Below are positions 6,609 to 6,790 of a stretch of 11,447 nt of DNA, piece by piece. The position numbers and the translations under genes were made by a program. Position 1 is the stretch's first letter. Every line of letters starts with the position of its first letter. Origin of the DNA: Octopus sinensis (lineage: Eukaryota); contig NW_021826976.1 in assembly GCF_006345805.1 (NCBI RefSeq), positions 1 to 11,447 of the forward strand, in the 5' to 3' direction. The notes below the pieces were generated by a model, which saw only the letters and a list, made by a program, of their open reading frames with translations, was not told the origin of the DNA and did no database searches.

Positions 6609-6727
6609 ATATATAGCCATATCACTTTGAAAACATCGGTTTTCGTCTGATCATCGAAGTTAAGCAACGTCGAGCCTGGTTAGTACTTAGATGGGTGACC
6701 GCTTGGGAAACCTAGGTGCTGTAAGCT
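6609..6727 (+). pseudogene. 5S rRNA: Full-length (119 nt) 5S rRNA-derived copy, probably a retroposed pseudogene or SINE3 head
   Basis: Ungapped 119-nt alignment to metazoan 5S (about 90/119 versus human 5S as recalled; several differences match invertebrate 5S as recalled). Box A agttaagcaacgtcg sits at +50 (6658) and box C tagatgggtgaccgc at +80 (6688); cctggttagtactt is invariant. Helix I has mismatches and there is no oligo-T terminator at the 3' end. Confidence 0.93.
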
Positions 6728-6790
6728 AAAGGCGGTGCTCCAGCATGGCTGCAGTCAAATGACTGAAACAAGTAAAAGTGTAAAAGAGTA
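6728..6790 (+). mobile_element. Family C SINE 3' tail fused to the 5S copy
   Basis: aaaggcggtgctccagcatggctgcagtcaaatgactgaaacaagtaaaagtgtaaaagag is nearly identical to the tails at about 8910-8968 and 10675-10735. Confidence 0.92.

Follow-up and report, generated by a model that had tools for sequence, protein, structure and literature searches.

A 5S rRNA-derived head on the tail of a resident SINE in Octopus sinensis: probably an inactivated copy of a 5S-headed SINE

SINE families with a 5S-derived head have had many independent origins, and SINE3 of zebrafish was reportedly shown to be 5S-derived by Kapitonov and Jurka in 2003. Small RNAs are also found joined to retroelements in bipartite chimeric retrogenes (U6-L1, 5S-L1 and similar), which are said to have been described by Buzdin et al. 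in 2002 and 2003. Chimeras of the U6-L1 type are typically flanked by TSDs, contain L1 with a poly(A) and represent single events, and such one-off small-RNA chimeras are rare per genome. As for the 3' end of SINEs, an often used reference is the eel pair UnaSINE1 and UnaL2, reportedly characterised by Kajikawa and Okada in 2002, in which SINE and LINE have in common a conserved stem-loop near the 3' end and, after it, short tandem repeats at the terminus, which are needed for recognition by the reverse transcriptase (the 'stringent' type). SINEs are exceptionally numerous in octopus genomes and have been connected both with the expansion of these genomes and with transcripts expressed in the brain; to our knowledge, the origin of new SINE families in octopus is undescribed.

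New SINE heads arise by template switching of the reverse transcriptase onto small RNAs (PMC4824008, PMC4758252). The closest described case is HaSE3 of Helicoverpa armigera and related moths, in which a 5S head is placed on the 3' region of the tRNA SINE HaSE1, an arrangement that its authors ascribe to template switching from the tRNA-SINE RNA to 5S rRNA; HaSE3 is less abundant than this tRNA-headed sibling (PMC3272025). In lepidopteran SINE3 families the promoter is conserved and the part of the head upstream of the promoter has diverged (PMC10886601). SINEBase defines a SINE as an interspersed, non-tandem sequence of less than 1 kb with at least 60% identity to tRNA, 5S or 7SL over at least 60 nt, and separates it from a pseudogene of such an RNA if sequence foreign to the RNA is added or if its copies have diagnostic substitutions in common (PMC3531059).

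Here we analyse an element at positions 6609-6790 of the forward strand of an 11,447-nt stretch of O. sinensis DNA (contig NW_021826976.1 of assembly GCF_006345805.1), the whole of which is referred to as the window. An initial annotation of this DNA had proposed that the element is either a member of a SINE3-type family or a template-switch chimera. These turned out to be the right pair of candidates, and the anatomy was found to be as described there.

The 5S-derived head

Rfam aligned positions 6609-6727 (+) to positions 1-120 of the 5S_rRNA model (RF00001), untruncated and with three single-nucleotide gaps only, at a score of 90.1 bits (E 8.6e-19, gathering score 38). Antisense-ORF similarity likewise identifies this stretch as a full-length, 5S rRNA-derived head of 119 nt: its antisense translation reaches up to 76% identity, over 33 codons, to antisense ORFs across genuine 5S rDNA, and because of this amino-acid identity the nucleotide identity of the head to 5S should be at least 76% over 99 nt. 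It is the only 5S unit in the window when Rfam is searched down to E<=1, the other weak matches being microsatellite artefacts. The full-model alignment also places the internal control region at 6658-6705 (+), with box A at 6658-6672, the intermediate element at 6675-6680 and box C at 6688-6705, which we take to be the equivalents of Xenopus 5S nt 50-64, 67-72 and 80-97, coordinates that reportedly go back to Pieler et al. (1987). Box A, the intermediate element and box C are all retained in the head, as is demanded of a 5S-derived SINE. The reading of the initial annotation, namely a complete 5S of 119 nt with box A and box C in register, thus stands on the alignment of the full model with no more than its three small gaps.

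The head also contains a number of defects. The canonical 5' end of 5S, which forms the 5' strand of helix I, is replaced by ATATATA (6609-6615, +), as seen from the helix I mismatches, and this heptamer is either a decayed 5S start or a TA-rich flank or 5' extension. At 6640-6643 (+), corresponding to 5S nt 32-35, the sequence reads TTTT, a Pol III terminator within the head; the antisense codon over it is AAA (K), which has a frequency of 0.00 in 218 real 5S segments, where E or D is present. The Rfam structure alignment contains two non-canonical pairs within helix I and a third outside it. No T-run was found at the 3' end of the 5S part, the next run of four or more T's being located at 7016. 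The internal TTTT, the helix I mismatches and the missing terminator had each been pointed out before, with the suggestion that the copy is probably dead, and we agree: with its TTTT and helix I mismatches the copy at 6609-6790 is inactive, and full-length transcripts from it are not expected because of the internal TTTT.

The distribution of substitutions over the head was derived from a HMMER search with the antisense frame that spans the junction between head and tail. This search gave 296 matches, all of them ORFs antisense to ordinary 5S rDNA from a range of eukaryotes; a tail-derived motif was present in none of the best 150 of these 296 matches, a weak negative given that the protein collections contained no called ORFs made of family C, the SINE that shares the tail, alone. 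A protein-word search with this frame gave no candidates either. From the matches, 226 real 5S gene segments were translated in the antisense frame of the head to serve as a panel, and a codon was called aberrant if the head residue occurred at a frequency of 0.03 or less in this panel, or if it was a stop. Seven codons of the head are aberrant, at 5S nt 14-16, 17-19, 26-28, 32-34, 44-46, 101-103 and 104-106. Within nt 47-100, a span that includes the internal control region, none of the 18 codons is aberrant, compared to 7 of the 19 outside it (Fisher p=0.008), a statistic that concerns one copy and a panel chosen by similarity to the query. With strict overlap of the boxes the counts become 0/14 versus 7/23 (p=0.03). 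In addition, of the six CpGs that remain in the head, four (nt 47, 60, 63 and 92) are located within nt 47-100. In this copy, the substitutions are shown in this way to spare the promoter.

A comparison of the head with individual 5S sequences at the nucleotide level was dropped; several apparent 'mutations' (nt 28, 81 and 95) seem to be present in genuine 5S genes of insects.

The tail module, its partner SINE and the surroundings

The tail of the element is shared with a SINE of ~414 nt, designated family C, which is composed of a tRNA-like head with box A- and box B-like motifs (judged by eye), an internal TA/TG microsatellite, a body and the tail. The window contains four copies of it, three of which include the tail. 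C1 (10322-10735, +) is full-length, with head, microsatellite, body and tail; C2 (8604-8969, +) is 5'-truncated, starts at family position 40 and is 87% identical to C1; by alignment, C3 (9027-9252, -) is a diverged relative with the same tail module and the fourth copy is a head fragment (11199-11376, -). The tail module is thereby common to at least two SINE subfamilies in the window.

Using a six-frame composite query, three family C-derived stretches were found in a gene model of O. bimaculoides (UniRef A0A0L8FSD0), including the family C body-tail junction with 89% identity to copy C2. Because it is translated inside this O. bimaculoides model, family C with its tail module is a genuine Octopus repeat, and we presume that it accounts for a large share of octopus genomes. 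In A0A0L8FSD0, an older SASH1-like gene model, it is residues 46-74, 465-510 and 695-740 that translate family C, in differing frames and strands, and RefSeq orthologues from O. bimaculoides, O. sinensis, O. vulgaris and Argonauta align over 76% of the protein only; the model could be due to SINE exonisation or, more likely, to mis-annotation. The orthologous genes of O. bimaculoides and Argonauta extend over more than 100 kb, and the one transcript retrieved from this search contains no SINE match.

In a multiple alignment, the homology to family C begins exactly at ..GTAAGCT/AAAGGCGG.. in the element and at ..CTCGACT/AAAGGCGG.. in family C, the slash marking the junction. The dinucleotide CT at 6726-6727 (+) is common to the 5S 3' end and to family C (..CGACT/AAAGG..) and constitutes a microhomology of 2 nt. 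The remaining 63 nt (6728-6790, +) form the SINE tail module, which was delimited by BLASTN and alignment and is 95% identical to 10674-10736, 92% to 8910-8969 and 89% to 9073-9027 on the minus strand. A 42-nt probe taken from the tail matches at 8910 with 3 mismatches and at 10674 with 2 mismatches, and no match was obtained with any of 200 shuffles. Outside the window, neither a pattern for the junction nor a generic tail pattern has a match among metagenome contigs, and the tail pattern has none among prokaryotic-genome and viral contigs; as even the family C tail is absent from them, these collections are free of octopus DNA, and the negative for the junction carries no information on copy number. 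The element also ends where the full-length copy C1 ends, at (TAAAAGNG)2-TA: its terminal octamer repeats TAAAAGTG-TAAAAGAG-TA (6773-6790, +) make up the retroposon 3' end, with the same terminus at 10719-10736 in C1. The junction with its 2-nt CT microhomology and the assignment of the tail to the last ~63 nt of family C, both put forward in the initial annotation, are thus borne out.

Two adjacent hairpins are predicted in all four copies of the tail, that of the element included: hairpin 1 at 6731-6750 (+; GGC-G-GUGC-UCCA-GCAU-G-GCU) and hairpin 2 at 6752-6765 (+; CAGUC-AAAU-GACUG), the latter being reduced to 4 bp in C2. Among these four copies, the changes in hairpin 1 are wobble-compatible only and compensatory double changes are absent, and hairpin 2 has a variable loop (AAAU, AAGU, AGCU) on a stem that is kept. 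Of the earlier description of the tail as one stem-loop plus repeats, CAGTC-AAAT-GACTG and the repeats remain, and the single stem-loop gives way to this predicted pair. The junction sits 3 nt upstream of hairpin 1, and C3 carries a 6-nt insertion (ATTTCA) that the alignment puts into the tail at a distance of 2 nt from this junction; because the hairpins start 3 nt from the junction and the C3 insertion falls close to the same boundary, the 63-nt tail behaves as a discrete module. Since it is common to three tRNA-type SINE copies in the window, the tail is, as far as can be judged from sequence, a genuine retroposition module. A LINE carrying this module was found nowhere within the 11,447 nt of the window.

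Around 6609-6790, no TSD above chance was detected, as 248 of 300 random control positions score equally well, in agreement with the initial annotation, in which no TSD had been found. With an alternative 3' end near 6935, in an A-rich run, there is no TSD either (108 of 300 controls score equally well). As a convincing TSD was not found at the full-length family C copy C1, the absence of one at the element is weak evidence. The A-rich run itself (6908-6938; CAAAAACCC-A16-GAGTAAAAAAA) lies ~120 nt downstream of the element, has a weak resemblance to the octamer tail (85% over 20 nt) and may be the end of another retroposed sequence.

Several further repeats were noted in the window. A (TA)n tract lies immediately 5' of each of the two full-length family C heads, at 10283-10321 for C1 and at 11377-11400 for the head fragment on the minus strand; together with the ATATATA at 6609-6615, these tracts could mean that the partner LINE prefers TA repeats as target sites, or they could be untemplated or belong to a 5' extension. 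At 8899-9093, C2 (+) and C3 (-) lie tail to tail across a (TA)n tract and form an inverted repeat of ~190 nt, which has sub-threshold Rfam matches to plant miRNA precursors (MIR4208, 51 bits versus a gathering score of 140) and could potentially fold into a long hairpin if transcribed. A second SINE-like family is present in at least 5-8 copies (3150-3900, 4326-4408, 5048-5400 and 6256-6486), the copy at 6256-6486 being situated ~120 nt upstream of the 5S head. Several of its copies are near-tandem, with a start-to-start spacing of 186-223 nt (D11-D18), and look like a SINE-derived tandem array. Two pairs of inverted repeats, 9250-9353 with 9590-9693 (104 nt, 91% complementarity) and 9498-9592 with 10754-10848 (95 nt, 86% complementarity, one arm just downstream of C1), suggest a MITE- or foldback-like family. 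Finally, 4839-5060 and 5829-6050 form a direct repeat of 222 nt with 89% identity, 990 nt apart (D20).

Origin of the element

In the element, a full-length 5S is followed, from its natural 3' end onwards, by the tail of family C, in the same orientation and down to the family C terminus. In terms of the SINE definition given above, the element is 182 nt long, it is the sole 5S-like unit in the window with unrelated flanks, and its similarity to 5S amounts to 90 bits over 119 nt and at least 76% identity over 99 nt. As to what separates a SINE from an RNA pseudogene, extra non-RNA sequence is present as the 63-nt SINE tail, in the single copy seen. Most probably, 6609-6790 derives from an octopod 5S-headed SINE of the SINE3 type and represents a copy of it that is now inactive; this SINE would have originated by a template switch at CU and would have been mobilised by a LINE. 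That this SINE belongs to a structurally undescribed octopod 5S-headed family, a 'minimal' SINE of ~182 nt with its head swapped by template switching, is a more tentative proposal, to which we give slightly less than an even chance.

By analogy with described SINEs, the head would supply a type 1 internal Pol III promoter (box A, intermediate element, box C), and Pol III transcription would read through the tail, in which a T4 run is absent. The reverse transcriptase of a partner LINE would then recognise the 63-nt tail through its two hairpins and TAAAAGNG repeats, a recognition module that would equally be carried by the abundant tRNA-type SINE family C. As to the origin of this combination, a LINE reverse transcriptase may have copied family C RNA from its 3' end for ~63 nt and then switched template onto the 3' end of 5S RNA via the CU microhomology.

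The substitutions in head and tail bear on the age of both parts. Outside the promoter the head has at least 8 changes in 57 nt, counted against the 5S panel and not against the octopus's own 5S, and a lower bound in that synonymous sites and the anomalous first 7 nt were ignored. The tail differs at 2 of 60 positions (~3%) from the majority consensus of three copies, one difference being a CpG to TpG change (p=0.05 for head versus tail). Because of this difference, the evidence leans towards a head that had drifted before the copy at 6609-6790 was made. That the drift has spared the promoter is, for its part, suggestive of a master from which copies were amplified. Both the intact promoter and the age difference between head and tail are expected of a lineage in which selection acts on Pol III promoter activity alone. 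Neither is expected if canonical 5S rRNA was inserted once and then decayed neutrally and uniformly; with an old pseudogene that acquired a younger neighbour, the head should be older than the tail, but an intact promoter would not be expected. We therefore infer that the source of the copy was a SINE master and not cellular 5S rRNA. Since an active master cannot have carried the TTTT, at least that change must be private to the copy.

Published repeat annotations of octopus, as far as their tables of class totals go, contain a matching class. In the curated annotation of O. vulgaris, 'SINE / 5S' is listed with 4 consensus families and 9,831,953 bp (PMC13282606, Supplementary Table 1), a reported ~0.35% of the genome, and at this class total a 5S SINE in an 11-kb window would be unremarkable. 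One recently active 5S family is given in that source with 7 insertions covering 42,242 bp (PMC13282606 Table 1); as the resulting ~6 kb per insertion is far too long for a SINE, this entry suggests that the SINE/5S class may include 5S rDNA arrays. In an independent tabulation by copy number, 0.030% of the repeat copies of O. bimaculoides are SINE/5S and 0.021% are 5S-Core-RTE, and in O. vulgaris SINE/5S represents 0.039% (PMC8967140, Table S2). The SINE/5S classes of octopus were obtained largely by automated classification. The initial annotation had named prior cataloguing of the family as something that would speak against its proposal: at the level of the class this is indeed the case (PMC13282606, PMC8967140), the consensus level lying beyond the class totals on which this comparison is based. 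In other words, the element class is already in the octopus repeat libraries and, when compared by class label alone, the exact family is undescribed there. In the giant squid, ~24,000 loci derive from 5S rRNA, and many of the very abundant ncRNA-derived loci have been suggested to be SINEs (PMC6962438). Full-text literature searches for printed tail, head or 5S sequence strings returned nothing relevant.

The foremost alternative is a one-off chimeric retropseudogene, for which a LINE reverse transcriptase would have switched from family C RNA to cellular 5S rRNA or a variant of it, the product never having been amplified, as with the U6-L1 and 5S-L1 chimeras of mammals. Template switching onto small RNAs is an accepted mechanism and the layout of the element conforms to it, with a complete small RNA at the 5' side, a 5'-truncated retroelement in the same orientation at the 3' side and a junction with microhomology at the RNA 3' end; moreover, the window holds only one copy, and this copy is dead (TTTT). 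Neutral decay, however, should strike the promoter equally, as opposed to the 0/18 versus 7/19 aberrant codons (p=0.008) that were observed, and head and tail should be equally old, as opposed to at least 8/57 versus 2/60 changes. The unit as a whole is not flanked by TSDs, as a U6-L1-type chimera should be, a weak objection since C1 has no clear TSD either. Singletons are furthermore rare per genome compared to a SINE/5S coverage of ~0.35% in the class totals for O. vulgaris, which makes a family member far likelier than a singleton in an 11-kb window. The Octopus SINE/5S coverage, the promoter-sparing head and the young tail together favour a 5S-headed lineage over a one-off chimera, and we regard the latter as the less likely of the two.

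Chance juxtaposition, in which a 63-nt 5'-truncated family C copy would have been inserted later at the 3' end of an old orphan 5S pseudogene, agrees with the existence of 5'-truncated family C copies (C2, from family position 40), with a head that looks older than the tail and with the lack of TSDs bracketing the whole unit. It needs, on the other hand, an insertion within ~2 nt of the natural 5S 3' end and in the same orientation, and an old neutral pseudogene should not retain a promoter span free of aberrant codons. The initial annotation had reserved this explanation for an orphan 5S gene with a native 5S upstream flank, and the head is preceded by a microsatellite, unique sequence and the remains of a SINE unrelated to it, not by a 5S spacer or array. 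We consider such a juxtaposition very improbable. A 5S gene (orphon) that functions or did so until recently, or two repeats joined by an assembly artefact, is still harder to believe despite the high Rfam score and full-length match, given that the head has an internal TTTT at nt 32-35, three broken (non-canonical) pairs, no 3' T-run as terminator, residues absent from 180-220 real 5S segments and a single copy outside any tandem array, and that the junction is an exact module boundary with microhomology, which a random mis-join would not give.

Be it a family or a singleton, the element is a known kind of object, made by a known way of making SINEs, and illustrates a modular route in which a 5S head with a Pol III promoter is placed on a tail that resident LINE machinery would already recognise. 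A singleton would be an ordinary by-product of retroposition. If the 5S-headed SINE does form a family, the 63-nt tail would be the minimal cis-element that suffices for recognition by the partner LINE of octopus, the diagnostic head substitutions (5S nt 14, 18, 28, 46 and 101-105) could be used as markers in octopod phylogeny, and part of the '5S-derived loci' that inflate cephalopod rRNA gene counts would be explained. Such a family would also be a natural example, in a mollusc, of the exchange of a type 2 for a type 1 Pol III promoter between SINEs.

Comparison with known systems

The tail resembles the 3' end of UnaSINE1 and UnaL2 in having 3' hairpins followed by terminal tandem repeats, from which a similar function of the octopus hairpins might be supposed, although there is no sequence similarity between the two tails. 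With the U6-L1 and 5S-L1 chimeras the element has in common a complete small Pol III RNA at the 5' side and a 5'-truncated retroelement at the 3' side, in the same orientation and with the junction at the RNA 3' end. It differs from the U6-L1 type by the absence of a TSD, by a tail of the stringent type with hairpins and repeats, and by the promoter-sparing drift of its head.

Like SINE3, the element combines a 5S-derived head, containing a type 1 internal promoter, with a 3' tail that is putatively of the LINE type. In contrast to SINE3, it has no body between head and tail and its tail is unrelated; with ~182 nt it is at the short end for SINEs, and one copy only is known here. The published Octopus 'SINE/5S' repeats have the same genus-level host and the same class label, a likeness that is drawn from class totals alone.

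The initial annotation had called the combination of a complete 5S with a tail only unusual, a statement that has to be revised in view of HaSE3, which is a close precedent (PMC3272025). In both cases a 5S-derived head sits on the 3' region of a tRNA-derived SINE from the same genome; the 5S similarity of HaSE3 is highest in box A, the intermediate element and box C, and the octopus head is likewise promoter-sparing; and one HaSE3 copy has no TSDs, as is true of the octopus element (PMC3272025). The two differ in that both body and tail of HaSE1 are present in HaSE3, compared to no more than the last 63 nt of the partner SINE in the octopus element, and in that HaSE3 has HaRTE1 as partner LINE and ends in TGA repeats, compared to the octamer repeat of the octopus element. 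The hosts, moths and an octopus, belong to different phyla.
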